Sequence record: PV029745.1
Reading direction: 5' to 3' (one strand)
Length of the DNA: 64,000 nucleotides
In this document: in pieces, positions 5,592 through 63,218 of the stretch
Layout of the letters: every line of letters begins with the position of its first letter
Position numbering within the stretch: the stretch's first letter is position 1
Notes under the pieces: model-generated
What the model was told of the DNA's origin: nothing
The model's input: only the letters and a program-made list of their open reading frames with translations
The model's database searches: none
Made by a program: the position numbers and the translations under genes

Positions 5592-6173
5592 TCAGTCCGA
5601 TTCAACGGCCATGGATAACTCTTTATGTTTCCTTCGTCTTTCAATATCAGCAAACCATGGTCTTACACTTAACCATATTGCAGGCCAACTGAGAATAGCC
5701 GCTACAGCCATCCACACTGCACTGAGTAGCACCCATGCGTCGTTACCATCGTCAACATCTCGTGGAGCTATGTCGAGTTGATAGTCAGTTCCAACGGGGA
5801 CATGGTGATAAGTGTAATCACCTAGCTTAGTTTCGTATACGAAGGGGACACCTTTCATCTTCCCTTCCCAACGACCCATTAGCTCTGTGTAGATCCCATG
5901 TTTGTATTTGTGGGTCTCTTCCCATTTCCAGGTCAATACAACCTGGGTCTTACGTTTGGTTACGTAGTCAGAGAAGAATGAGTTGTAGACTGCACCACCC
6001 ATAAATGCTAAGCAGATTAGGTAGAGCACCACACAACGCAGTTTAACCCACTTGGAGATTGGTACATACGGCTCTTGTTTCATAGTCATCGTACAGCCGA
6101 TTGCGTTTGCATAACCCAAGGGATTCCTTGATGCCATTGCATTTATTGCGGCTGCCTCCAGAGTTATACTCAT
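5592..6173 (-). CDS. hypothetical membrane protein
   Basis: 193-aa ORF with two hydrophobic segments; coupled to the upstream stop. Confidence 0.65.
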   Translation of the reverse strand: MSITLEAAAINAMASRNPLGYANAIGCTMTMKQEPYVPISKWVKLRCVVLYLICLAFMGGAVYNSFFSDYVTKRKTQVVLTWKWEETHKYKHGIYTELMGRWEGKMKGVPFVYETKLGDYTYHHVPVGTDYQLDIAPRDVDDGNDAWVLLSAVWMAVAAILSWPAIWLSVRPWFADIERRRKHKELSMAVESD

Positions 6174-30760: not shown

Positions 30761-33700
30761 ATGTTAGACTCATTCCGTTCGATATTTGGCGGCTTGACAG
30801 TCAAAGAAACTGAAACGGAGATTATCATCTCTGGTATTCGTGGATTCGACATAGTCCGAGATATCAGTAAGCATTGGAAGACCTCCAAGATTACAACCAA
30901 CCTGTTTAACAACATTGGCCGGAACTCATTAAGCTTTTATAAGTTCTTTGCTCCTGAAGTAATGTACATGTTGGAAAACATTGTCTATTACCGTTCTCGA
31001 TATACCTCTGTAAAAATGATCGCTGCTATTAAAGATGCGCTTTTACAGAATACTTGGCTTGCCTCTACTAAAGCCATTGATGAGAAATCAGTACAAGGGC
31101 GACTTAATCTAGCTAATCTGGCACGATTAAAATTTGATCCAAAACCGTATCAATTGGAATATTTCAAGAACTATACCTATCGGCTAGATCAATACAATCT
31201 AAATGGTGACTTAATTGCCGCAGCCGCCGGTACGGGTAAGGCACAACCACTAAACACCATGGTTAAAATTCCTGGTGGCTGGAAACGTATGGGTGATATT
31301 CAAGTTGGTGACATGGTCACTGCTTGGGACGGTACCCCGACTAAGGTCACCGGCGTTTACCCACAAGGGAAGAAACAAACTTTTACGGTTACCTTCAAAG
31401 ACGGTCGCACGACCGAAGCATGTGATGAGCACCTATGGCGAGTCTATTGCTATAATTGGACGAGGGATGGTAGCGATGGTTGGCGAGTAATCAACACCGC
31501 CACCCTGTTCGGTTACATGTCTATGAAGTCATACCGGAATCGACTTTACGTGCAACTCTGTAAGTCCGAAGAAGGTATGGATGTCGATCTACCGATCGAT
31601 CCGTATAACCTCGGGGTTATTCTCGGCGATGGTGGGATCAGTTCGAGTTGTGTGACCATTACCAGTGGTGACCCTCAACTATTCGACACGTTCAGTAAAG
31701 CTCTCCCGGATAACCTCAACCTTGTCGCCCGTGACGCCATTACCATGGGGGTCATCAACAAGAAAGGTGAACGTAACCCATATACCAGTGCTCTTCGAGA
31801 TATGAATTTGCTAGGAACGAATTCCCTTTCTAAATTCATTCCGCAAGAATACCTGTTCAGTTCTACTGCCCAGCGATTGGCTCTTGTACAAGGTCTTATG
31901 GACACAGATGGTACAGTTGACGAGAATAGCAACCTCAGTTTCACCAGTTGCAGCTACATGTTAGCCAAGCAGTTCCAGTACCTAGTTCGTTCCCTGGGTG
32001 GCATTGCCAAACTGGCGTTCAAAGAGCCTACATTCACGTATAACGGCGTCAAGAAGTACGGTAACATGTCTTATCGGGTAGCTGTCCGGTTTGATACCCC
32101 CAGTGCACTTTTCCGCCTTGATCGCAAAATAGCTCGATGCAACGACAATAACCAATACGCGGATAATCTTCGTTTACAGGTGAAACATGTTAACCTGTCG
32201 GATCGAGTGGAGTGTCAATGTATTCAGGTTGAACATCCCGATCACCTTTACGTGACCGATGATTTCGTCGTGACACATAACACATATCTTACTTCAGCTA
32301 TTGCCGAGATGCTTGATGCTGAACTCATTGTTGTAATGTGTCCTAAGAATGCTCTGGATCTAGTCTGGTTAGATTCCCTGAAAGAGATGTTCCATAAGCC
32401 GCAAACAGTTTGGCATACGTTCGAACCTAATATGCCCTACAAAGGACAGCGTTGGATCGTCTGTCATTACGATGCAATGGATAAGGTAGTAGAACTTCTT
32501 AGAAACCGTAATATAGTTGGTAGCAAACGTACTGTGACGATCCTTGATGAATCGCACAACATGAATGACCCTAACTCTACACGGACTAAACTTTATCAAC
32601 TCATTGTAAAGATGGTCGGTTCTCGTAATAATCTTTTAGCTTCGGGCACGCCTGTAAAAGCATTGGGTGTTGAACTGATTAACTTACTGCGAATAGTAGA
32701 TCCTCTATTCACTCCTCAGGTAGAAGAACGCTTCAAGAAGATGTATGGTAAAGAAGCATCTAAAGGACTCGATATAATCAGACATCGATTAGGTCTTGTA
32801 TCCTACAAGGTAGAGAAACAAGAACTCGACCTAGAGCCCCCGATCATGCGTCCTTATCCAATTAAAATTCCGAATGGTGATGACTTCACCCTTCCGGCTA
32901 TTAGAAAGGTTATGGAAGCATTTATTCAAGAACGCTGGGCTTACTACAAAAAGCGGAGACCTGAAGATGATAAACGCTGGGCAGAGTTCTGTGGACTCCA
33001 TCGAAAAACCCTCAAAACAGCCGCACAGGAAAGAGCCTTCAAAGAGTACTTGGATCTGGTCAAGTATGTTCAACAGATCCCTGATCCACGCTTTGCAGGA
33101 GAGGAAATTAAAGCAACGAACCAATACGAGAAATTAGTATTTGGACCTTCCCTTCCAAAGCAATTCATCCATGAGTTCAGAGACATCAAATCGGTTATTA
33201 AATATACTAACCTTAAGATTCAAGGTGAATGTCTTGGACGTGTGTTAGGTGGTAAACGTATTGAGTGCCACGTGGCAATGGTCCCGTATGTCGACTGGGT
33301 TGGTATTACAGAATCTACTCACAAGAAGACGATTATGTTTACTAGCTTTGTTGAAGCAGTGGAAGCAGCAGATGCACATTGTGTTAAGCTAGGTATGAAA
33401 CCACTAGCCGTTTATGGGAAGACTACTAATGAACTGGCTGAAATCGTTAAACGCTTTGATTCGGGTAAGGATCTAAATCCACTCAATGCTACATATGCTT
33501 CTCTATCGACGGCTGTTCGCCTGACAATGGCAGATACCTTGATTCTATTGAATAGTCCATTCAGAGCTTATATTCTGGAACAGGCTATATCTCGTGCTTA
33601 TCGTTTAGGTCAAGATTCTCAAGTTGTCGTTTACCAGTGTTCTCTCGATACTGGAGATATCCCAAATATCTCTACCCGATCGGCTGATATTCTTAAATGG

Positions 33701-33916
33701 AGTCAAGATCAGGTAGAAGCGATTATGGGTATCAAATCTCCATTTGAAATTGGAGAAGCAATGGAAGATCATGGTGATGAAACAGAGTTCGATGAGAACA
33801 AAGTAATACACAACGTTCTTCAGAAAGCATTCGAAAAATTCGACATCGAGATTCCGGCAGTTGATTTCGAGATACCCCTTAAACCCAAATCTAATGTTCC
33901 CGCATATTTGCGGTGA
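30761..33916 (+). CDS. SF2 (SNF2-like) helicase interrupted by an intein
   Basis: AAAGTGK|T Walker A, ILDESH, ASGTP, QAISRAYRLGQ. Confidence 0.88.
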   Translation: MLDSFRSIFGGLTVKETETEIIISGIRGFDIVRDISKHWKTSKITTNLFNNIGRNSLSFYKFFAPEVMYMLENIVYYRSRYTSVKMIAAIKDALLQNTWLASTKAIDEKSVQGRLNLANLARLKFDPKPYQLEYFKNYTYRLDQYNLNGDLIAAAAGTGKAQPLNTMVKIPGGWKRMGDIQVGDMVTAWDGTPTKVTGVYPQGKKQTFTVTFKDGRTTEACDEHLWRVYCYNWTRDGSDGWRVINTATLFGYMSMKSYRNRLYVQLCKSEEGMDVDLPIDPYNLGVILGDGGISSSCVTITSGDPQLFDTFSKALPDNLNLVARDAITMGVINKKGERNPYTSALRDMNLLGTNSLSKFIPQEYLFSSTAQRLALVQGLMDTDGTVDENSNLSFTSCSYMLAKQFQYLVRSLGGIAKLAFKEPTFTYNGVKKYGNMSYRVAVRFDTPSALFRLDRKIARCNDNNQYADNLRLQVKHVNLSDRVECQCIQVEHPDHLYVTDDFVVTHNTYLTSAIAEMLDAELIVVMCPKNALDLVWLDSLKEMFHKPQTVWHTFEPNMPYKGQRWIVCHYDAMDKVVELLRNRNIVGSKRTVTILDESHNMNDPNSTRTKLYQLIVKMVGSRNNLLASGTPVKALGVELINLLRIVDPLFTPQVEERFKKMYGKEASKGLDIIRHRLGLVSYKVEKQELDLEPPIMRPYPIKIPNGDDFTLPAIRKVMEAFIQERWAYYKKRRPEDDKRWAEFCGLHRKTLKTAAQERAFKEYLDLVKYVQQIPDPRFAGEEIKATNQYEKLVFGPSLPKQFIHEFRDIKSVIKYTNLKIQGECLGRVLGGKRIECHVAMVPYVDWVGITESTHKKTIMFTSFVEAVEAADAHCVKLGMKPLAVYGKTTNELAEIVKRFDSGKDLNPLNATYASLSTAVRLTMADTLILLNSPFRAYILEQAISRAYRLGQDSQVVVYQCSLDTGDIPNISTRSADILKWSQDQVEAIMGIKSPFEIGEAMEDHGDETEFDENKVIHNVLQKAFEKFDIEIPAVDFEIPLKPKSNVPAYLR
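31241..32281 (+). mobile_element. class 3 intein (347 aa) with LAGLIDADG homing endonuclease
   Basis: Starts AQPLNTMV (Ala1), ends VVTHN followed by Thr; Trp in block B (HLW), Cys in block F (ECQCIQV), Thr in block G; LGVILGDG and LVQGLMDTDG motifs. Confidence 0.9.
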
Positions 33917-34327: not shown

Positions 34328-37300
34328 ATGGCATATGCTAACCCTGACAAACAACCTGGGGCCTATCCTAGTACCCAGGTTGTAAAATGGACATTTGATT
34401 CTAATGTCGCTACTAATGGTGTCGCGTATTCTGTTAATGGTTTACCGCCAGTCGTTTCTGAGTATATCGCTTACGATTCTTTAAGCCCGCCTACTCCATT
34501 CATTGCCGTTACCCAAGATGGTAACGGTAACGTTGTTTACGATGGTGGTTTTCCGAAGTTCATGAATCCACAGGCAGCAAACATTTCCATGACTCAGGGT
34601 GTTCTAGATTTCTCAGCTAGACTACAACCTGATGCAAACGGTCTAGACCTTTGCTACTATGAAGTAATTAACAATAAGACTTACATTGTTAAAAGTGGAG
34701 ATGTTCTTGTTTATGACCACTATGTGTTCGATGATGCATATTTTGGTTTAGACTGTACCGTTTATGATGAAACTGGTAATAACCCTGTTAGATTTAGGGA
34801 CTACAGTCCTGTAATCAAAGACAATGGTAACCCCGCTACTGCAACACATCCAGTTATGTGCAGAGACAGGCCAGAATGGAAAAACAAATGGGTAACACGT
34901 ACAGTCCCATTAGAAGCCATTGTTGGTAAGAGATTATCGACTTGGACTGTAGCATTCGAGAACGATGCAGATCCTATCCTTGCAAGAGAGTATCGTGGTC
35001 AGCTGAGAAATGCACGGGTCCTTAATGGAACAACTGTTGCTTTTGATGTCATGACAGATAATCTTGTAGTTAATCCAACAACACCGCAAGATTGGATAGG
35101 TAGTTGGACTGTTACCCGTAAACGTTATCTTGGTCCAGGTAAAAACCTAAACTCTAGTCAGACCTATTTTAAGAACTGTCTTGACTTTATTGCTAACCCT
35201 GCAAAAGTTGCTAGTGGTAATAAAAACATTCTTGTCATAGGTGATGCAACTACTGGTAGCTATGCACTGAAGACCGCGTTCAATGAATACATTACTAAGG
35301 TTGCAGGGGCCGGCGGTTTTACATGTACATTGAAGGATCAGACCGATTATGATGGAACCCATTTAAATCCAACCTTAACGGAATTAAACAATTACGCAGG
35401 GTTGGTATTTGTTGGTTCTTTAAGTGATCCGGATCAATCGGTTAACGGTAAGTTCACGAAAACTGCGGTTCAGGATATTCTTACATATCGGAAAGCCGGT
35501 AATGGTATTTTCATATTCACTGATCATGGTCCAGCTATTAACAGTATTGAAGAAGCATATCCGGTTCCAACTGCAACTAACTGCTTCTTTGTTACTGCTA
35601 ACCAACTTGCTGTAAACTTCAACGCATACTTCAGTGGCTCCGTTGACAGATCAAATGTGAATGTTGGATTTATACGATCGACTTATGGGGATCATGTCCT
35701 TTATAATGATCTAACCGATGGCGATTTTATCGTAGCCGGCGGCAGTGAATCGAGTGTAGTCGTTAAAGAAGTTGTTTTCCAAAAGAAGGATCCAGTAACA
35801 CTGACCCTCAACCCTGGAAAACATACTGTTAACTTCTTGCTGAAGCTTACTAACGGCGACGTCGTTCCAATGACGTTTGTCTACTTGATCGGCGCAGGTA
35901 AGTACGTTATATTCCGAGATAACAAGGGAGTTGAAATTACACAACTACTCAATGACATTTCTGATATCGCTGATATCGTAGTTGAATTGGATGGCACAAG
36001 TGTTGGCTCCATGATAGCGGATATATTCCGTGTAGACATAACTAAAGTAGATCCATTTAGAGATATTAAAGTGGGTACTGCTGTTTACGATCCGGCAACC
36101 GGAAGTCATCAAACTATCTATCCTGTTGATGGTATCTACGTTAACAACGCGGATCTCATTAAGGTACGTATCACTCAACCATTCACTTATGAAGCAACTC
36201 TTCCTGTGACTCGGTATCAACCTCCGATCGCTGGTAAATATGGTCGTGCCGAGAATACACTTCCGTTAATGCCGCGATATAAGACGGGTGGTACTACCAC
36301 TGAGCCAATCTACTCGATCTCTCATATCCAAGTTCCACGGAGAATTATTGAAGAGATCCAAGTTGTTCGACCTGTGTACAACCTTACTGTGATAACGCAG
36401 AGTGTAGCTGATCACTTCAAAAATATCATTAGTTACTTTGCTGGTGAGCTTCCTCGTAACGAAGGGCAAGCATTTGCCTATAAAACCGCTGCTGACACAA
36501 GTGCAGCTCTAGCTCGACTATCTCCACCGACACCTAAGCAAATCTTCGATACATGGGATCGTTTCTATGCTGATGAATATTTTGCTAAAGGTCAAGGTAT
36601 CCCACCGTTCCTTCCCGATGGGACTACCCCTCATCCAGCGGGTCGTTGGTATTGGGACGATACGATCAAAGCTGCTGTAATGCCTGACAATACGAGTTCC
36701 ATTACTGGTTTCCTTTCAGATGAAGAACCAGAACAATACACACTTGAAGTTACATGTCAATCTAACAATGGTGACGACGACTTCTTGGGTGTGGTTCTGG
36801 CGTTTGTTAAAGAGGGCGATCAAAGCCATCATTTGACACTCGCATTGTCTCGTAGTAACTCGAATGGAAATGGACGAGGTAATGAAGCACAGAACATCAT
36901 CTACGATTTGAGTATGGGTACCAGACAGAATATCATTTCTGTTAATACTGGCGATTACTCTAATCAAGGTTGGAACGGTGCTTTCAAACGAGTTAAGGTT
37001 ATTAGGACTGGTGATATATTTAACATCAGTATCTCCAAATGGGGAACGACCGAATATGATCCAACTCTGTCCATGACGGTTGACCTGAACAGTGATCCAC
37101 TATTGGCTAAGTTTAAAGGTCCTAAGAAATACGGTTACATGGCCTTCTCGCAACCGCAATCGTATTTCAAAGACATCGTTTATACTGGACTTCCACGCAA
37201 CATTGTTTGCGATATGGGCTCCAATAAAGTTTATTCTTGGAATGGTACCGGTTGGGTACTAATGCAGAATACAACACCTAAAACGATTTACGGTGCACCA

Positions 37301-37378
37301 CGGGTAATCAGAAGTTTTGAGGACCCAACGCAAGCTTGGAGAATTCCAGTTAATGGAACTCCGGTACCTGTGCAATAA
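34328..37378 (+). CDS. large virion structural/tail-fibre-like protein
   Basis: 1016 aa, beta-rich; DGGFPKF and C-terminal DDDFLGVVLAF lectin-like motif. Confidence 0.65.
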   Translation: MAYANPDKQPGAYPSTQVVKWTFDSNVATNGVAYSVNGLPPVVSEYIAYDSLSPPTPFIAVTQDGNGNVVYDGGFPKFMNPQAANISMTQGVLDFSARLQPDANGLDLCYYEVINNKTYIVKSGDVLVYDHYVFDDAYFGLDCTVYDETGNNPVRFRDYSPVIKDNGNPATATHPVMCRDRPEWKNKWVTRTVPLEAIVGKRLSTWTVAFENDADPILAREYRGQLRNARVLNGTTVAFDVMTDNLVVNPTTPQDWIGSWTVTRKRYLGPGKNLNSSQTYFKNCLDFIANPAKVASGNKNILVIGDATTGSYALKTAFNEYITKVAGAGGFTCTLKDQTDYDGTHLNPTLTELNNYAGLVFVGSLSDPDQSVNGKFTKTAVQDILTYRKAGNGIFIFTDHGPAINSIEEAYPVPTATNCFFVTANQLAVNFNAYFSGSVDRSNVNVGFIRSTYGDHVLYNDLTDGDFIVAGGSESSVVVKEVVFQKKDPVTLTLNPGKHTVNFLLKLTNGDVVPMTFVYLIGAGKYVIFRDNKGVEITQLLNDISDIADIVVELDGTSVGSMIADIFRVDITKVDPFRDIKVGTAVYDPATGSHQTIYPVDGIYVNNADLIKVRITQPFTYEATLPVTRYQPPIAGKYGRAENTLPLMPRYKTGGTTTEPIYSISHIQVPRRIIEEIQVVRPVYNLTVITQSVADHFKNIISYFAGELPRNEGQAFAYKTAADTSAALARLSPPTPKQIFDTWDRFYADEYFAKGQGIPPFLPDGTTPHPAGRWYWDDTIKAAVMPDNTSSITGFLSDEEPEQYTLEVTCQSNNGDDDFLGVVLAFVKEGDQSHHLTLALSRSNSNGNGRGNEAQNIIYDLSMGTRQNIISVNTGDYSNQGWNGAFKRVKVIRTGDIFNISISKWGTTEYDPTLSMTVDLNSDPLLAKFKGPKKYGYMAFSQPQSYFKDIVYTGLPRNIVCDMGSNKVYSWNGTGWVLMQNTTPKTIYGAPRVIRSFEDPTQAWRIPVNGTPVPVQ

Positions 37379-43678: not shown

Positions 43679-43715
43679 AATGGAACATAAAGCCTCCCCG
43701 AAGGGAGGCTTTATA

Positions 43716-44297
43716 TTAGTTACCTTCGTAGGTACCTTCAGTGCCTTGTGCTTGACGACGCTCCAGTCGAGCGCGAATCAGTTCACGTGCAGCGTTCATG
43801 TGGAACAGTGCTTTGGCATTTTCTTCACAGGCAAACTTACCCGATTGGAAACCTTCGAATACAATGATCGAAGCAGTCAGCAGATCTTCAACAGTTACCC
43901 CGTTAATACCAACTTCAGGGATTACTCCGTTTTGAAGCAGGATAACCAGTTCGAGTTTATTATCACTCGGTTCAGCAGCTTTGTTTGTAGATGCATCGAA
44001 ACCAGAGATCACAATACGTTTTGGTGCGCCAGACATTTCATCGACACCATAGGCATCAATAGTCTTACCACCGGAACTACCGGATACCTGACCATCTTCT
44101 AGTTGTTCAACGGAGATATCTACCGTAGTACTAGCCTTAACATCGTCCGGTTGGGATTCAGCATTAGCATTATCCACATCCAGATTACCTTGGTCGAGAT
44201 CTTTAACCTCAGTTTCAGATTCGACATTACTAGCATCTACCGGTTGGGCGACACCATCTTGGCTCTCTACACTAAGAGCCCAGTCCAGACCTTTCAT
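43716..44297 (-). CDS. Tad1-like nucleotide-signal sponge domain with acidic N-terminal propeptide
   Basis: C-terminal LQNG..INGVTVEDLL..FQSGKFACEENAKALFHMNAA...R...R...GT parallels Tad1 FQKG..[31 protein letters not shown]...R...R...LGT. Confidence 0.72.
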   Translation of the reverse strand: MKGLDWALSVESQDGVAQPVDASNVESETEVKDLDQGNLDVDNANAESQPDDVKASTTVDISVEQLEDGQVSGSSGGKTIDAYGVDEMSGAPKRIVISGFDASTNKAAEPSDNKLELVILLQNGVIPEVGINGVTVEDLLTASIIVFEGFQSGKFACEENAKALFHMNAARELIRARLERRQAQGTEGTYEGN

Positions 44298-44306
44298 CAG
44301 TTCACC

Positions 44307-44777
44307 TTAAGAGTAGCGGACTTTAACAATTTGCAGAAGCAGTTCTACAGCGTAGTTACCGTCAGCTTTAGCGATACCCGGCATCTGTGCACGAATAGTC
44401 GCCATGGCAGCGGCCTTACGCTTCAGAATATTGCGTTCCTTACTGTTTTCAACTTCAGCCACACCACCAATCAGGGCATTGACTGCGATATTTTCAATGG
44501 ACGCATTGATGCGTGCACCAGCGGTGTATTTACGAACTAGTTTACGCAGTTCAGCTTCCAGGTTCTGTCCACGATACTGTTCAGCTTCCAGATAACCGGT
44601 AGCCAGTTCGGCGAAGTTACGAACGCCGGACTTACCAACCAACAGATTGGTCAGAGTATCAACCGGAAGAGTCGATGCGAGCTGAGCCAGGTCATTACCT
44701 TTAATTTCAGAACGGGCCAGTTCCAGTACGGATTCAACACCAAGGAGTTTCAGAGCGATTTTGCGAATGATAGACAT
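44307..44777 (-). CDS. hypothetical (probably virion) protein
   Basis: AGGA RBS before MSIIRK; in the late tail block. Confidence 0.6.
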   Translation of the reverse strand: MSIIRKIALKLLGVESVLELARSEIKGNDLAQLASTLPVDTLTNLLVGKSGVRNFAELATGYLEAEQYRGQNLEAELRKLVRKYTAGARINASIENIAVNALIGGVAEVENSKERNILKRKAAAMATIRAQMPGIAKADGNYAVELLLQIVKVRYS

Positions 44778-44793
44778 TATTGCGTTTCCTGTA

Positions 44794-46770
44794 TTAAAAG
44801 CGATCAGAAGTTTGAGCGAAGGCAGAGACCGTACGGGCGACCTCACCATCGAGAACCCAAGACATTAGGTTCGAAGGACTACGCCAGGACTTGAAACTTT
44901 GAACTGCACGAGTCAGGTTAAGATTCAAACGTTTACCAGCGTAATAGAAATCTGCCCACGATTGCGATGTTAGAGTCGACACGTAATCTTGGAACAGACT
45001 TTGTTCATCCCACACCGCTCCGTCAGTAAGAGCAAGCGCAGTAGCAATACCACCATCGCCAGCAACGGCTTCACCAGCTGTAGCAGAAATAGCACGACCA
45101 GCAGTACCCAACCAACTTGGACTAGCGAAGCCAGCCTTCAGTGGGATATGCATTAACTTAGATAGGTCTTTAACACTAAAGGTTACTTCGCAACCAAGCA
45201 TTTCGTGTTCTGCGTTCCAACCAACGTTACCGACACCACGACGGATTTGAATGCTATCCACGATCCCCAATTGTCTCTGTACTCGACCTTTATGGAAAAT
45301 CTGACAGATGAACGGAGAGGTGTAAGCACTTCGACCAGCTGACCTTGGTAATCCCATTGGGAGAATCATGGCTAGTGGTACGTATATGTTCATGAACCTG
45401 GATATTTTATTTCCATAAGGGGAGATCAATTGAACAGTATACGAGGCAGATGGCAAGGACGCCATTGCCGATTCCCAGTACTCAGGTGCATCAACGAAAG
45501 CTGCGCCAGCCAAAGTCTCAAGACCGGATAAGTTAACAGAGTCTAGTGCTCCTGAAATAAATCCTTTAAGCATATCCGTAACAGCACCAACACCTTCAGT
45601 GATATTACCACCCATGAAGTCAAACGATGCTGCGCGGCCCTCACCTACTTTCGTATTCAAGGTTTGTACAACACCCACATCACGTGTAGTGTTAGTAAAG
45701 GATTCGGATACTTCGCCATTATAGTCGACACGGAATGTAACGAACTGAGAACCATCCCGCTGTGCACCTACAACGAAGTCGTACACGTTCTTCAACTCGC
45801 CCCAGCTGCTAAAACTTTCAGTATCGATAACACCATTCTTCTCGGATGGTTTCTTATCTGCTTCTAAATACTTCAAGAAATAATCACGCGCATCTGCTCC
45901 AGGTTTAGGGTCTGTTACAGCTTTAGCCATTTCAGATTCGATACCTGCCCGGAGTTCTGCTAAGGTACGTGCTTTCTCAGCCATTGCTCGCATTGATTTT
46001 TGAGCTTGGTCTGACATGCGCTGCGTACGGCCAGCCAAAGACATTACATCGACACCGCCATCTGGACGGAAGAAACCTGGGAAGATTTCATGCATTCGCT
46101 TAACGTCATCTAACCCTACCCGGTGGCCTGGGTCTTCTAATGGCCGCTGAGAATCATCTAGAATACGAGGAACCATACCCAGGGCGATGGCGAACTCGTT
46201 AGCCAATGTATTCACAGACGACCAGTATGCGTGCATAGTTGGTTTAAAATAGAACCACTTAGAAGGCTGCGATTTAGTCAAGAAGCTAATAACACGAGAT
46301 ACGCCAGTTACTCCAAGAATAAATGGTTGAAGGGGCAGGGTGATGAAATAACCTGTTACGTTACCAAGGTTGTACCAAAGATCGGATGTAACGCCGGTAT
46401 TAGCTAAACCAGCAGCTGAACGATCATAGAAGTTCGTGAAGAACGAGGTCCAACTCGAATAACGTGGAACACCAAACGACATGTGTACTTCTTGTTTAGT
46501 ATCGTCATGTGCTTCCGAATAGTAACGACCCATACCTAAGAAACGATCTTCATAGGTACGACCACGACCAGGCTGACGGATATCAGCATAGCGTGTGTAT
46601 TGTGGGAGAGGGTTAATAGCGAAACTACCACCCAACGACGTATTTGTAAATTTGAAAGCAGCCGAGTTAGCGTAACGCCGTTTGGTCTGAGAACCATACG
46701 AGTTCTTATTGTCATTAATAGGTAATAAGAAAGCTTGGCGCAACCAAATGGGCTTAACATCTGTTGCCAT
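44794..46770 (-). CDS. tail-tip/baseplate protein (phiKZ gp182-like position)
   Basis: 658 aa immediately downstream of the tape-measure gene; synteny. Confidence 0.6.
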
Positions 46771-46825: not shown

Positions 46826-49800
46826 TTAAGTTAACGAGAGGGGTGACGGGCGATTTTGAGCCGCGGTCGTTCTCATTAACGTGGAGGTCATACTATTATT
46901 TCCTCCGGCTTGGGTTTTCGAAGCTTCTTTGATACTACTGTCCTTTTGTTCGTTCAGTTGTACCAAACGCTTGAGATGATCACGCATCTCAATTAGCGTC
47001 TTAAGCTGCTCAGCTTGGATATCATCGATCTGTTTAGCCTTCTCGTTATTACGACGTACTTCAGCTTGACGAGTCGAGTTCTGTTGCTGTGCTGCTTGAA
47101 GAGCTGCTTCTTGTTGGGCTTGGATAACATTACCGCCACTATCAGCAGATGGATTAGTTCCGCTAGTAGTTGTTCCACCCACGGGGTTCATTGGAGTAAT
47201 ACCAGGAAGTACCGGTGTTTGGGCAGCAGTACCAGTGGCACTGTATGCTTCTTCACGAGCAACCGCTGCATTACCAGCATTGTTACTATCATCAGTATTC
47301 CAAAGTTCGACAGCAGACGCCTTAGCATTAGCCTTGGCTTGTTCTTCTGTCGCCTCTTCCGGAGTCATGGTTTTACCCGCTTCCTGTGTAGCTACAGAAC
47401 TACCTTCAGCTCCACCACGATGCTTTGCAATCTTCTCTTCGAACATTTGATAGATTTCCCCGAGAGTACGAGGTTGTCCACCTTTCTTGTAGAAGATCGG
47501 TCGGTTAGCAGATGCTGCTTCAGGGAAGACCGATGCGCCGATGGTATCCTGATTACGAGTCAAGAACTTACGTGCACCACCTGGTCCCATGAAGTGAGCG
47601 ATGTAAAGATCTACGTCTGTTGGATCGCGTCCTAATGCATCTTTAAGGTAGGTGTAGTTATCTTTAAGGAAGCATGCACCCATTAAGGCGTTGATCCGAG
47701 GATCAACACGTAAACTACGTTGGGCGTCGTCTGGAGGAATACCGAACTTGGAGCCATGTTTCGCCAACATTGCGTCCCAGGTACTATTAATAAACTGGAA
47801 CCATCCGGTTGCAGACGATGTCTTAGCTTTGACGGTGTAATCAAAACCAGACTCAAGCGATGCGAAGATGAACAGAAGTTCTACTGGAATACCGACCATC
47901 GCTGCAACTGTTTGGAATGTTTCAGCAGCTGCTTGACGAGACTTATTGGCTTTCGGATATGGAATCTGTTCCCAAGCTCCACCGTTACCCTTTGTCAGGG
48001 TTCCGTATGTACGACCTGTTGCAGATACCTCGCCAGCCATACCAAGTTTGTACTGTGTGTTCGCCGCAGCGTCGGATACATAATCCATTGCTTTAGCGCC
48101 AGCTGCCTTGGTATTACTCCATGCGTTACTTACTGTTTCTTTAGCAGACTCCCAAGTATTCGAGATAGAAGCCATTGCCCTCTCGGCAAAGCTACCACCA
48201 GCGGCTGCGTTTTGTGTTCCAGCTGCTTGGTCACCCGCAGATTGAGTCGGCGTAGACATGATGTCTTTGCTTGCATCTTTCTTCAATTGTTCCAAATCAG
48301 CTTCAGCCATTTTCTTGAGATCGTCTTTGCTACCCTTAATCGGGAAGATAGAATCAACCTGCCATACACTAGAGCCGTCCCAATTAGTGACGCCCAATAC
48401 GGCATTACCCACAATAACAGCATCACTGGGTTTGAGTTTAGATTCCATGTTCGCAATGGTTGTTCCTTGAGTCGAATTACGCATTGCACCGTAGTAAGCA
48501 CGAGCAACAGGCATGAAACGACCAACGAACCAATCGTAATAGGTAGAACGATCCTCATCGTTACCAACGATATCTTTACCAAATAACGGTGCTGTTTCCT
48601 GCATGATAGATTCTAGGTCACCACGGAATTCAGGAACACCGCCCTGAATAGATAGACCATCGAATACCATTGCTTCAGCATTGAGAAGAGGATAGACGTT
48701 GTAGAAACTCAGTACTTCCAAACCGTAGGCACGCATCCGGATGGATTGGAGTGCAGTTAGCTTAGTAGTAGCTGCCGAAGTCGCAACGATTGGAGCACCT
48801 GTTGAACCACCCAGACCAGGGAAAGCCTTCTTAGCAGCAGCCAAGGGCATTGCTGACTTAGTAGGATCCATTGGACTCGGTGCGGTTTTACCAGTTGCTG
48901 TATCTGCCGCTTTCTTGGCGATATCCTGAGCTTTGGTAGCTACTTCGGTATTAGCCGCTGTAGCAGGTACCGTATCATCTTTCTTCTCGCCCGCTTTATA
49001 ACGAACGTATAGAGCTTTCCAAAGTTGATCAGCTGCTGGGATAGTGTCTTCCAATTCGCCTTCTTCGGAGAATGGGTCAACACGATACTGCATTGGTGTA
49101 TCACCCGATACAGAAATCTTAACAGCTTTAACTAATGGTCCTTTCAATTCTTGAGGGAACTTACTATCAATGTCAACGAGTTTGACTTCATTCTTTTTGA
49201 GTTTAGCTAGTGCTTTAACCCAAGTCAAGAAGACCGGACGGAAACGCATTTCCAACCAGCGGGACATACGCATTACTTGAACTTCATTCTTAACATCGAT
49301 GCCAAGAATATCAAGAATAGCCTTACCACCAACTCCACTGATATTAAAGTCGGGTTCTTCTGTCCGTTCGGTTACGCGATCAAAAGCATCTTCAAGTGCA
49401 GAAACTTTCTGTTGTTGATCGTGATCGGTAATACCGTACTGTAGCATTCTGAGTCGGCGGAACTCTGCTCTTTGATCGTTCATCTGACCAAAGATAGGTT
49501 TCAGGATATAGCGAGCAGTTAATTGTCCAAGTGGATTAAGACTCATTGCAGTCAGAATACCTGTCTGCTTTGCATCCATTCCATCTTTGCTATAACCATA
49601 AGCCATAGCACCTGTACCCACTGCGGCAGCTGTACCACCAAGTATCCAAGGAACTGCGCGTTTAGCAAGGCCCATTAAACGACCTTTAGTGCCACCTTTC
49701 ATACCACCGCCCATCAGCACGTCGAACGCACCAGAGCCTTCTTCACCTTCTGTACCGGTAAGTTTACTGAAGATACCTTTAAGTCCATCTGACAATCCCT

Positions 49801-52800
49801 TCAGGACTTTATTTTCAGCTTTACCGGTATCGCCATCTCCCTTACCCTTCAATTTATCCATCAAGCCAGCAGCGCCTTCTTTGGCCTTTTCTGCTTTATC
49901 CTGCCAACTACCAGCCCGGAGCTTTTCTGGAACTTGTGCTTGAAGAGTTTCAAGAATGCGACCCAATAGTACTTGATCAGTTGTTTCGAAGTCTTCGTAT
50001 GGTACGCGTTCAAAGATACGTCCAAGAACGTTACCACCCGCTTTAGCGAAACCACCTAACACTTTCTTAGCTGCACCTCCATAGAACTTACCCGTCTTCT
50101 TCAATGCCCAACCCATGTACTTCATGGAAGCATCGATATACTTCGAACGAGCAGCGCGAATACCACGCCATACAGTCTTACGGATGATACCTTTATTCTT
50201 AGCTAAGATATGTTTGGTACCGTCGTAGTTCTTAAGGTCTTTATACAGAGATGGTTCTATTACAGGTTCGCCTCTCTCGTTAAAGATCGTGCCATACACA
50301 TCACCAAAGTTTTCAATGACGCGACCTTTATCATCGAAGTACTTACCAGCATTAACTAGTCTTCGTTCGAGTACAGGTACATCATCACCAGGTAAATAAG
50401 CGTTCTGAGTTTCAATCGCGAAGTTGAATAGGGCCGAACCCATACCGATCGCTGTCTTAGCACCAAACTTCAGTGCGTTCCACGCTAAGGTAGATGTATT
50501 CGTTGCCATGAACTTGGCACCCCAACCCGCTACATTTGCTAGACGCCGACCTGTCTTGGTAAGACGCCAACGTTTACGAGTAGCACGCGACCATAGACCG
50601 GAAGCTAGTTCCTTAGCAGTTGCGATAATAGATCCATTCTTATCAAGTACATCACCTTTGATGTCTTGCATCGAATTAATCTGGTCACCATCTGCGTTGA
50701 AGTATTCACCGTTCTTTAGACCACGAGCAGAGATAGTGGGTTCTTGCTCACCATCCAAATACCAGTCGTGCTTATCATCTTCAGCTGCTTGTTTTTGCTG
50801 TGCGTTTTCACCTTCAGCAAACTGTTGAGCAGGAGGCGTTTGTCCACCCATTAAAGCACCGCGGATTTTATCCGCTGCGTTGCTCATGAAGGCAGGTAAT
50901 TCAAGACGCATTCCTTTCTTATCAAACAGACCTTGTGCAACTTCAGATGCTGTTAGAACCGTCATGCCAGTTGTAGAAACAACCTTACCGGTAATGTCGT
51001 GTACAGATTCGATAATCTTTTTGGTATTAAAGTCAACAAGGTTACCTTGAACAAAATCAATACCTTTAATGATGGGTTCATTTGGATTAAACTTTGTGAA
51101 CACATCAATGATCTTATCTTTCTGACCGATTGCATATTGGGTTGGATCATTCTGGAACTGATCCATGTGTTCTCCAAACTTAGCACGTGTCTTAGAATAG
51201 AGATCTTGACCCATTACATTCGCATCATTCCAAGCTCCTTGCAGACCAGCAACGTAAGGACCAAATTGGCCATTACGCATGTTGTTAGCAAAGTCATGGA
51301 TACCGGCGCCGTGCTTATTGTTCAGGTACTGGAATTTCCCCTGTGCAATACGGCTGTAGCGAGATAGTTCTTTCTTGATTCGATCTTCTTGTGGTGCATG
51401 TTTATTTCGGAAACGACGCATTGCATTAAGCGCATTGGCTTTAGCTGCACCTGGGTAAGCAGGACCAAAGAAGTTCTTATCATTCATATCACCAGAAGCT
51501 TCAGGTTGATAGTCACCATTAACCCATGGGTTGGTATCAGTAACGCCAGAGCGCATGATCTCCCAAATACGGTTATAGTTTATCCTATCTTGTCCTTGTT
51601 CAGTAATGATGATACCGAGCATCCGTAAAGGTTCAGTTTGACCAGCATTAATAAGACGATGTACTTCTTTAACTGGGTCACGACTTACAGAACGAATGTC
51701 AAGGAAGGCACGAGAGTATTCATCCCGTAGACGATGGTTTTCAGCATTATCTGCCATTTTACCTTTATCGTCATACTGGAACTTACTCTTAAAGAACCTT
51801 TGAATTTCATCCGTGGTTGTGGCATCCAAGCCATCCATATAACCGCCGGATTTAAGGTAAGCTTCTGGATCAAATCTACGGTTTGTAGACGCATCGCGAA
51901 GCATACGTTCACCAAGTGCCTTACGTGCAGCTGGAGAAAGTTTACCCTCTTCATCCATCAAGTTCAATGTGTCATTAATGGCACCACTCGCACTTCGAAT
52001 TGCTGCTGCTGGAATAATCTTCTTCTGAAGACGATCATCCGACAGCGATTGAACTTCGAATCGACCAGTTGTAATATCGAATACTTCACGCTCGATATCA
52101 TCGCGACCAGTGCGAATCATTCGCAATTCTTGAAGCTGGCGAGACAGGTAACCTGGGATGACTTCAACGATACTACGCTGCGTCAATTGGTTAAAGGCCG
52201 CGCCTTGATCAATTGTTTGATAGTTTCCGTTTTCCAAACGATCGTTCATGTGGTACTGAGGAACGAATGGCATAATAGCATCACGAATAACGCCACGGAA
52301 ACCATAAGTGTTTTGGTAGTTATTAACGAACTCTTGTAGATATGCTGGAACGTTGTCTAGGGCATACCCTACCTGATGATGGCGTCCACCAAAACGGTTG
52401 GATAGTTTTTCCATAGTCGGACGAACTTTACGACCTGCCCATGGAACAATAGACGATTTAAGGATATCGGCACCGTATTCACCGGCGATTTGACCAGCGA
52501 ACTTATAGCGATTATCCCAAACGGATGAACCAGCCATATCGCCCATGCGTAGACCGGCTACGATCTCCGATAGACGTCCGCCCAGGCCGCTGGCAACACG
52601 TTCGTTTACTTTGTTACCATAACTACCCAAGAAGCCATGAAGGCCCTGTGCAGCTCCGCCAGCTAGGCGTCCGAGCATGTTGCCCCGGCCGCGACCTGAA
52701 CCAAAACTGGTTAGATCGCCAACATTGCCTTTCTTGTAGTCTGGTAAGCCGGTATTACGAACTAATGCTTCATAAGCCTTATTCTGCAATTCAAGATTAG

Positions 52801-53596
52801 CTTCTTGTACTTTAACAAGATCCCTAATACCCATGTAGGTACGGAACTGAAGTTCAAGGCCTTTACGTTGAATTCCATAATTAACTTGTTCGTTATATCC
52901 TACAAGACGAGTTAGACTATCTACAGCCATCCCCATCGAACGGGACATAAAGTCAAAGCGTCCAGCACTTACTTTATCACGAATTCCACGTTCTGCTCTT
53001 TCAACGGCAGCGCGGGCAACTGCACCCTGTTCACTACGTTGGAAGTTTTCTCTGCTTACCAGCGTATTCTGATCGAGAGCAGCTTTAATTACATTTGCAT
53101 CATCATTTTCTTGCCGACGACGACGAATAGCGATTTGGTCCCTTTGGGAATCCACTTCGTACTGATATTGTTCAACCTTTCTGGTGAGCGTATCAGAGAT
53201 ATTTTCGTATAAGGCATTTGGAATGCGATCTTTTAACTGGGGTAGATAATCCTGTGCTTTACGACCAAGGTAATCTAGGTCGGATGCATTGACTCTTTCG
53301 ACCGTATCTTTGATATCGGTTACCGAAGCCATTACATCATCATAGGCACCAAAAAGACGCGCGAAACCATCAGGCGCTGCGCTTCGTAAGAAATTCCTTA
53401 CGATGTCTTTGGTTTTCAATCCACCGAGGAAGCCCTCTTTCAGACCAGATTTGAAATCGGTTACTGGATCACCAGGTTTGGTGGTTTCACCGACATCATC
53501 AAACAGGTCGTCCAGCTCATTAAGGTCAAGTACACCAATTCTGTTCTGGGCATTCATCCCAGCAGGTTTTGGCAGCTTGGTCTTTTTTGTAGCCAT
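46826..53596 (-). CDS. tape-measure-like virion protein with C-terminal lytic transglycosylase domain (phiKZ gp181-like)
   Basis: ~2250 aa, helical; [47 protein letters not shown] motifs; divergent from RNAP genes. Confidence 0.85.
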
Positions 53597-53663
53597 GGTC
53601 AACTCCATCGATATAAACAATCATATCGTTTAGCTTTTTGTAACCCCTAAGAGGAAATTTGAA

Positions 53664-62384: not shown

Positions 62385-63218
62385 ATGCATCCTTTGGCAC
62401 AATCTTCTTTTGGTGTCCAAAATTCTCCGCAGAATCAGGTACGTATTGGCTGCACTATGTTAGCTGGTACGGACAAAAAAGGAATTCTTGCGCCGAATGC
62501 GGACGGTTATTATACTGTAGTTCTGGGTGCCTATGGTACACATAACTCTGCTGGTATGTTCTATGACGAAGCCAGTGGCGTTGCGATGTTTGATCCGAAC
62601 TCTTCCCTGATGCGTCGCCTTAAGAAAGGTGTTCTCTTCATGGAGTTCAAACACCCTGAACCGTTTACAGACCTGATGATTGATGGTCGTGTTGTTCGTC
62701 AACCGATGGATGATCGTCAATACCTGCAACGTATTCGTATGATCGACGATAACCGGGTTTGTGCACATATCCGTGCATTGACTATTGTTCCCGGTAAGAA
62801 TGAAAATGGTAAGACTGTTAAAATGGTCGTCGGTGAGGTTAAACCTTACGGTCCGTTTGGTCACATTTTTAAAGAGTCTTTGGATAACCCAAGTATCAAT
62901 ACCTATTGTTCCGTTCGTTCTATCACACAGGACGACGTAATGCGTGGTATTAAGTATACACGGGAAATCTCCACCTGGGACTTCGTCGGTGAGGGTGGTA
63001 TCTATATTGCTAACAAATATACCTCCCCTGCTTTGGAAAGTTTCTCTGATACCGAAGTTATCATCACACCTGCTACCCTTTGGAAGATGCAGGATGAAGC
63101 ACAGAAGCGTGCTAATATCGGTATGGAATCTGATCCTAATCTAGACGTTACTGATCTAATTCAACAACTAGGTTGGTCGCGTAAGAAGCCGATTCGTGTA
63201 CCTGCTTACATGCGATAA
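62385..63218 (+). CDS. prohead protease (phiKZ gp175-like)
   Basis: YYTVVLGAYG..N, EFKHP, RVCAHIR, VKPYGP, CSVRSIT, TWDFV.E.GI; C-terminal ALE/GME putative autocleavage sites. Confidence 0.8.
   Translation: MHPLAQSSFGVQNSPQNQVRIGCTMLAGTDKKGILAPNADGYYTVVLGAYGTHNSAGMFYDEASGVAMFDPNSSLMRRLKKGVLFMEFKHPEPFTDLMIDGRVVRQPMDDRQYLQRIRMIDDNRVCAHIRALTIVPGKNENGKTVKMVVGEVKPYGPFGHIFKESLDNPSINTYCSVRSITQDDVMRGIKYTREISTWDFVGEGGIYIANKYTSPALESFSDTEVIITPATLWKMQDEAQKRANIGMESDPNLDVTDLIQQLGWSRKKPIRVPAYMR

Follow-up and report, generated by a model that had tools for sequence, protein, structure and literature searches.

A probable virion-delivered Tad1 sponge in the jumbo phage phiHQ: an orthologue of phiKZ gp184 that lacks the putative capsid-fixed module

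The present analysis indicates that the gene at positions 43716 to 44297 (minus strand) of the 64,000-nucleotide stretch of DNA considered here (the window) is an orthologue of phiKZ gene 184 and, as we judge probable from sequence comparison, encodes a Tad1-type sponge that is delivered by the virion. In the mechanism that we propose, a 193-aa precursor would be made late, alongside the virion genes that lie upstream of it, and an acidic disordered extension with a conserved L-x-W-A-x-x-L/V-E-S start would carry this precursor into the prohead. There, the head maturation protease (62385-63218) would cut it after E11 and E64, and the Tad1 domain of about 129 aa would remain in the filled head and leave with the DNA at ejection. 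The ejected domain would then bind the Thoeris signal gcADPR, and probably cyclic dinucleotides, in a pocket made of F150, N160, R177 and R181, and the sponge would work ahead of the expression of any phage gene. The initial annotation of this DNA had proposed a packaged Tad1 sponge and is supported by our results; for phiHQ itself, we infer that the protein is packaged, where exactly it is cut and that it binds its ligands. As the same idea has been published for the orthologue gp184, that reading would thus be right but not new.

The window originates from Pseudomonas phage phiHQ (PV029745.1), a phiKZ-like jumbo phage of 300.6 kb with which it shares 100% identity; its identity to PS119XW, of the genus Pawinskivirus, is 97.7%, and that to PA1C 97.6%. 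The whole gene (43716-44297, minus strand) encodes the 193-aa precursor and was recognized as the orthologue of phiKZ gp184 and of 201phi2-1 gp280 from the ORF list, phmmer, gene order and a match to phrog_23843 (E 2e-77). Its ATG start codon stands 9 nt past the stop of the preceding gene, and reading of the sequence places an AAGGTG ribosome-binding site (44303-44308, minus strand) 5 nt ahead of the start and partly within the stop codon of the gene upstream. This upstream small gene (44307-44849, minus strand) is, by the ORF list and gene order, the positional counterpart of phiKZ gp183 and is without family, PHROG or NCBIfam match; its longest ORF overlaps the end of the next upstream gene by 56 nt, and the annotation of PS119XW uses a later start (156 aa). 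It is preceded by a gp182-like virion structural protein of 658 aa (44794-46770, minus strand; phrog_3181, E 2e-244, and phrog_20401 'virion structural protein') and by a gp181-like giant tail protein of 2264 aa with a tail fibre/transglycosylase region (46826-53620, minus strand; phrog_3201 and phrog_4067), both also assigned through notes in the 201phi2-1 and PhiPA3 records. The gene under study is the last of this co-oriented run of virion genes, in agreement with its first description as part of a late tail/head block. The window also carries, on the plus strand at 62385-63218, a head maturation protease of the phiKZ gp175 type (phrog_3014 'head maturation protease', E 1e-91), which we predict to be the enzyme that cuts the precursor. 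In every phage record searched that carries the gene, its product is annotated as 'hypothetical protein'. A second ORF of 193 aa in the window (5592-6173) was considered as a possible paralogue and set aside, having no similarity to the Tad1-type ORF.

Directly after the gene, folding predicts a 15-bp stem-loop that starts within the stop codon (43684-43717, minus strand), with a dG of -23.7 kcal/mol and a z of -5.76; none of 200 shuffles was equally stable. A terminator had been proposed at the 3' end of the gene: the part of this proposal that stands is a stable hairpin, while the consensus terminator scan did not include it among its results, because the stem contains part of the U run. We consider this hairpin as a likely transcript end or stabiliser. 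It is symmetric, with a GC core and A/T-rich extensions on either side, and could therefore serve transcripts from either strand. Elsewhere in the window, the plus strand encodes a 1051-aa helicase-like protein (30761-33916), whose PS119XW counterpart is annotated 'DarB-like antirestriction', followed by a virion structural protein of 1016 aa (34328-37378, plus strand). A processed helicase, gp203, is reported to be packaged by phiKZ (bioRxiv 10.1101/2025.11.23.690004), and the helicase-like protein of phiHQ may be a second candidate for head-delivered anti-defence in the window.

The C-terminal part of the protein, from about residue 76 to 190 (43728-44072, minus strand), was assigned to Tad1 by AlphaFold2, Foldseek and a profile match, with three strands and a two-helix hairpin as predicted elements. 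A single-sequence phmmer search of the PDB matched CmTad1 at E 8e-8, and the family profile matched the solved Tad1 chains (CmTad1 and CbTad1) at E 2.7e-17 to 5e-14, spanning residues 5-124 of the 125-aa CbTad1 chain. The likeness to Tad1, first noticed by eye, thus holds in the HMM comparison over nearly the whole Tad1 chain, and membership of the Tad1 family is confirmed at the level of sequence. In the AlphaFold2 model, computed from a 45-sequence alignment, strands are predicted at residues 79-85, 92-98 and 116-121 and helices at 136-152 and 158-183, with pLDDT values of 85-95. When this model was compared with the PDB by Foldseek, all 20 matches at E <= 0.001 were Tad1 structures (TM 0.61-0.75, normalised on target length), and its matches in BFVD include proteins named 'Acb2/Tad1 hairpin domain-containing protein'. 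The predicted fold is therefore that of Tad1, with an antiparallel sheet in the N-terminal part and, after it, two long helices at the C-terminal end. The local copy of Pfam returned no Tad1 family for the whole protein, for residues 65-193 or for the relatives. This result is uninformative, because that copy appears to be without PF24729, the family that the precomputed annotation of the protein database gives to almost all of these proteins and homologues. A match of the acidic region to the NCBIfam nitrosocyanin model (23 bits against a cutoff of 143) was rejected as compositional.

The residues of the ligand pocket were mapped onto CbTad1 and CmTad1 through gap-free HMMER alignments. In CbTad1, F82, N92, R109 and R113 form the pocket shared by gcADPR and dinucleotides, and R90 and T97 (in CmTad1, R88 and T95) serve both in cyclic-trinucleotide binding and in hexamer assembly (Li et al., 2023 preprint). 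All four pocket residues are kept in the phiHQ protein, as F150, N160, R177 and R181; N160, R177 and R181 are invariant in the 45 aligned sequences, and the column of F150 holds F or Y in 43 of the 45. The trinucleotide and hexamer residues R90 and T97, on the other hand, correspond to E158 and F165. Among the 40 long relatives, the first of these columns contains E, Q, D, A, P or S and the second Q, F, N, M, T, E or D. None of the eight residues of the CmTad1 hexamer interface (R88, T95, K96, Q98, E99, M102, W103 and K106) is identical in the phiHQ protein. From these residues, we would expect gcADPR binding, and probably dinucleotide binding, to be kept, and regard cA3 binding and a D3 hexamer as doubtful. 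As the trinucleotide and hexamer residues are not kept, the protein is likely a gcADPR/dinucleotide-only sponge, possibly dimeric, and the cyclic-trinucleotide and hexamer site appears to have disappeared from its clade. The state of the trinucleotide (CTN) site limits the predicted range of ligands and not membership of the family, since this site was described after the family had been defined on gcADPR. A cA3-dependent NucC CBASS system is reported to reduce phiKZ DNA and to block an nlp1 mutant unless Acb2 is supplied, and the predicted loss of the trinucleotide site in this clade fits, by an indirect link, with that report.

Ahead of the Tad1 domain, residues 1-64 (44106-44297, minus strand) form an extension that charge and pLDDT describe as acidic and disordered, and that we predict to be a propeptide. 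It holds 16 D/E against 3 K/R, for a net charge of -13, and residues 1-75 of the AlphaFold2 model are mostly below a pLDDT of 50 and predicted to be disordered. All 40 full-length relatives (45-98% identity) carry such extensions, of 72-96 aa and with a net charge of -10 to -20. Two candidate prohead-protease sites of the form S/A/G-x-E, both predicted from column conservation, lie within it: S9-V10-E11 (44265-44273, minus strand) and, just ahead of the Tad1 domain, S62-V63-E64 (44106-44114, minus strand). The acidic character of the first 70 or so residues and both S-V-E motifs had been pointed out in the initial annotation, and they are indeed present. Two S/A/G-x-E motifs within residues 1-74 of a single sequence are at chance level (1.9 expected), and therefore the signal is the conservation of their position across relatives and not their number. 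At the alignment column of E11, the motif is present in 39 of the 40 full-length relatives; in all 40, the last residue of a motif falls on reference position 63 or 64, and this motif, which precedes the first Tad1 strand by 12-14 residues, is the sole S/A/G-x-E found in every relative. These conserved positions fall within the least conserved part of the protein. No S/A/G-x-E precedes the Tad1 domain in P0042 and P0043, two short homologues of the free-standing type. In phiKZ gp184, SLE-13 occupies the column of S9-V10-E11, and GHE-108 pairs with S62-V63-E64 in our alignment (A3). Cleavage at SLE-13 has been described for another phiKZ protein, gp93 (PMC5694885); S-x-E has been named as the cleavage motif of the phiKZ protease, and A-x-E is the motif reported for the related protease of SPN3US. 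A cut at the second site would leave residues 65-193 (43719-44105, minus strand) as the predicted mature product; its computed length of 129 aa agrees with the one first proposed and is close to that of free-standing Tad1 proteins (123-138 aa).

The closest relative of the phiHQ protein among solved structures is phiKZ gp184 itself (8Y6V chain I), the best PDB sequence match at E 8e-36 with the single sequence and 9e-53 with the profile. The gene order gp181-gp182-gp183-gp184 followed, a few genes past the gp184-type gene, by a thymidylate kinase is common to PA7 (Phikzvirus), 201phi2-1, PhiPA3 and PS119XW, so that the comparison covers four phage genera. The PhiPA3 and 201phi2-1 records also note the similarity to phiKZ gp184. 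On sequence and position together, the phiHQ protein is therefore an orthologue of gp184 and of 201phi2-1 gp280; the record of the latter, which has no insert, states that it was 'identified using mass spectrometry'. (The phiKZ protein called gp280 in a preprint on EPI vesicles matches in name only and is unrelated to 201phi2-1 gp280.) Much has been published on gp184. It is found in the phiKZ capsid with most of its chain unresolved, and the same article lists it as a substrate of the head protease gp175 (PMC11297242). Its injection into translation-blocked cells was validated by proteomics (PMC10449902). A recent preprint calls orf184 'tad1' and reports that it is non-essential and tolerates transposon insertions, and describes an N-terminus wedged in the capsid and a C-terminus that the protease frees and that enters the cell by injection when the phage next infects (bioRxiv 10.1101/2025.11.23.690004). 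According to a 2026 review (PMC13282480), which cites Li et al., Nature 2024, phiKZ injects Tad1, which blocks CBASS and Thoeris; phiKZ does not appear in the 2023 preprint of Li et al. The 90% cluster to which gp184 belongs (that of P0047) holds several members labelled Pseudomonas aeruginosa, as well as partial proteins from contigs of 220-572 bp that bear the label Klebsiella pneumoniae; both are most likely phage reads or carry-over in bacterial assemblies and not bacterial genes.

There are clear similarities and one clear difference between gp184 and the phiHQ protein. The two occupy the same genomic position, are 54% identical over the Tad1 domain and share an L-x-W-x-x-x-L-E-S start, the acidic extension and the S/A/G-x-E sites, but the phiHQ protein is 37 aa shorter. 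The phiKZ-type proteins (P0047-P0050 and P0041) have about 45 extra residues between AIE-59 and GHE-108 (gp184 numbering), a module that is absent from the phiHQ protein and from most of its relatives. In the AlphaFold2 model of the phiKZ-type protein P0047, this module is made of four short strands with a pLDDT of about 80. The model of gp184 in 8Y6V chain I comprises only 34 residues, and Foldseek aligned the phiKZ-type model to this chain (8y6v_I) over 34 of 34 columns, at 97% identity and an rmsd of 1.5 A; 8y6v_I was absent from the top 50 Foldseek matches of the phiHQ model. Foldseek prints no coordinates, and we infer the placement of the 34 residues from the nine positions at which P0047 differs from phiKZ gp184 (P0053). 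Stretches of 34 residues with exactly one difference start only at positions 1-5, 55-75, 144-177 and 182-197. The modelled part of gp184 is described as mainly beta strands (PMC11297242), and we placed it within residues 55-108 because this is the sole candidate stretch that fits the description. The first two Tad1 strands (gp184 residues 112-145) were rejected as the capsid piece, as P0047 and gp184 do not differ there. The capsid-fixed piece of gp184 thus appears, from these models, to be a lineage-specific module flanked by protease sites. A parallel is offered by gp162, of which the fragment 18-137 is retained in the capsid between two mapped cuts. Since the module is absent from the phiHQ protein, its entry into the head must depend solely on the acidic extension, and its route into the head falls outside what the phiKZ capsid structure covers. 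The vertex complex of Goslar shows no gp184 homologue.

The absence of this module is also an argument for a different reading, in which the protein would act as a sponge in the cytoplasm late in infection, without being packaged, and its extension would serve another end such as solubility, regulation of the sponge or nucleic-acid mimicry. The Tad1 proteins characterised to date are mostly free-standing and cytoplasmic, with lengths of 123-138 aa, and the number of motifs in the single sequence is at chance level, both of which would agree with it. We nevertheless find this reading improbable: the record of the insert-less gp280 of 201phi2-1 gives mass spectrometry as the means of its identification, phiKZ gp184 is injected (PMC10449902), the gene closes a run of virion genes, and the two S/A/G-x-E positions are kept in 39 and 40 of the 40 relatives amid the least conserved sequence of the protein. 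It is similarly unlikely that the protein is packaged and processed in another way, either uncut or cut after E11 only, so that the ejected species would bear an acidic tail. Many relatives do have further S/A/G-x-E motifs, for example near reference positions 19, 52 and 75, and partial processing is known for other head proteins of giant phages (PMC5694885), but the only motif found in 40 of 40 relatives is the one 12-14 residues before Tad1, and the site aligned with it in the phiKZ-type proteins, GHE-108, is the boundary of the capsid-retained module. Very improbable, lastly, is a mainly structural role as a minor capsid protein of the vertex-binding complex, in which a Tad1-like fold would be reused with no sponge activity: some distant homologues are annotated 'structural protein', but the 34 modelled residues of gp184 are placed in the phiKZ-type module, outside the Tad1 domain, phiKZ orf184 tolerates transposon insertions (bioRxiv 10.1101/2025.11.23.690004), and the conservation of the ligand pocket, where three of the four residues are invariant and the fourth is F or Y in 43 of 45 sequences, speaks for selection on binding.

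The packaged Tad1 sponge that we favour can also be placed in its wider family. When 1.84 billion representatives were searched with the profile, 5,029 members were recovered at E <= 0.001. Among the best 150 of these 5,029, the Tad1 domain is preceded by 30 residues or fewer in 78 proteins and followed by a C-terminal extension in 17, and 56 have an extension of more than 60 aa ahead of a Tad1 domain at the extreme C-terminus; 36 of the latter 56 extended proteins have a net charge of -5 or lower. In the jumbo-phage sample gathered with the phiHQ protein, the insert-less form, with an acidic extension and Tad1, is the commoner one, accounting for 36 of the 41 long protein clusters. The make-up of the family suggests, short of showing it, that Tad1 domains are widely delivered in association with the head, and in a modular way. 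We advance only tentatively, and leaning somewhat against it, the stronger claim that virion delivery is a common modular habit of the Tad1 family and not a phiKZ curiosity; if it were common, the module wedged in the phiKZ capsid would be a lineage-specific addition.

Two further groups of relatives deserve mention. Six of the 56 long proteins (346-591 aa; P0144, P0130, P0117, P0126, P0115 and P0093) start with a stretch that resembles the phiKZ major capsid protein, corresponding to positions ~142-280 of 635 in PF25620 (E 1e-9 to 1e-24) and ~223-355 of 746 in phrog_3231. An S/A/G-x-E lies 25 residues or fewer before the Tad1 domain in five of these six. A relative is a stand-alone gene of 376 aa (L006:10001-11131, plus strand) on a viral contig of 254 kb, with neighbours without known function. 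Separately, some short Tad1-like proteins encoded by phages of Bacillus and Klebsiella carry the label 'putative structural protein' or 'structure and packaging protein', including orf166 of Bacillus phage Bc431v3 (L005:1366-1746), BFVD A0A7R8MJE9, H38, H61 and H65-H68; these 'structural' labels on short proteins are apparently transferred from older records.

A sponge that arrives with the DNA can take up Thoeris and CBASS signals ahead of phage gene expression. The principle of a packaged sponge is already known from phiKZ gp184/Tad1, and the phiHQ gene extends it to the group of PA1C, PS119XW and phiHQ; the gp184-type assignment is also useful for annotating genes that are now labelled 'hypothetical protein'. 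What our analysis adds is the conservation of the protease-site positions, the observation that the module-less form is the commoner one, which separates head targeting from capsid fixation, and the prediction that this clade would not bind cyclic trinucleotides in the manner of CbTad1 and CmTad1.

Compared with other known systems, the phiHQ protein has in common with the anti-CBASS sponge Acb2 the name of the hairpin domain (BFVD, PF24729) and the sponge principle; its sequence and fold matches go to Tad1 instead, and no Acb2 chain is found among the PDB sequence matches or the listed Foldseek matches to solved structures. With the free-standing Tad1 proteins (CbTad1, 7UAV/8KBE, and CmTad1, 8KBB; Leavitt et al. 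2022, Li et al. 2024), it shares the length of the domain, the predicted fold of a beta sheet and a two-helix hairpin, and the residues of the gcADPR/dinucleotide pocket. Unlike them, it carries an acidic extension of 64-75 aa with protease motifs, and its residues at the CTN-binding and hexamer positions of CbTad1 and CmTad1 differ. IPI* of T4 and DarA and DarB of P1 are examples of anti-defence proteins that the head carries and that leave it together with the DNA, and the internal proteins of T4 have an N-terminal targeting peptide that is removed after a glutamate by the prohead protease. IPI* and DarA/DarB block restriction enzymes by binding or modification, and not by sequestering a nucleotide signal. 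The phiHQ protein has no sequence relation to any of these, and its extension is 5-6 times the length of the T4 targeting peptide (the capsid targeting sequences of T4 are described in PMC5694885).
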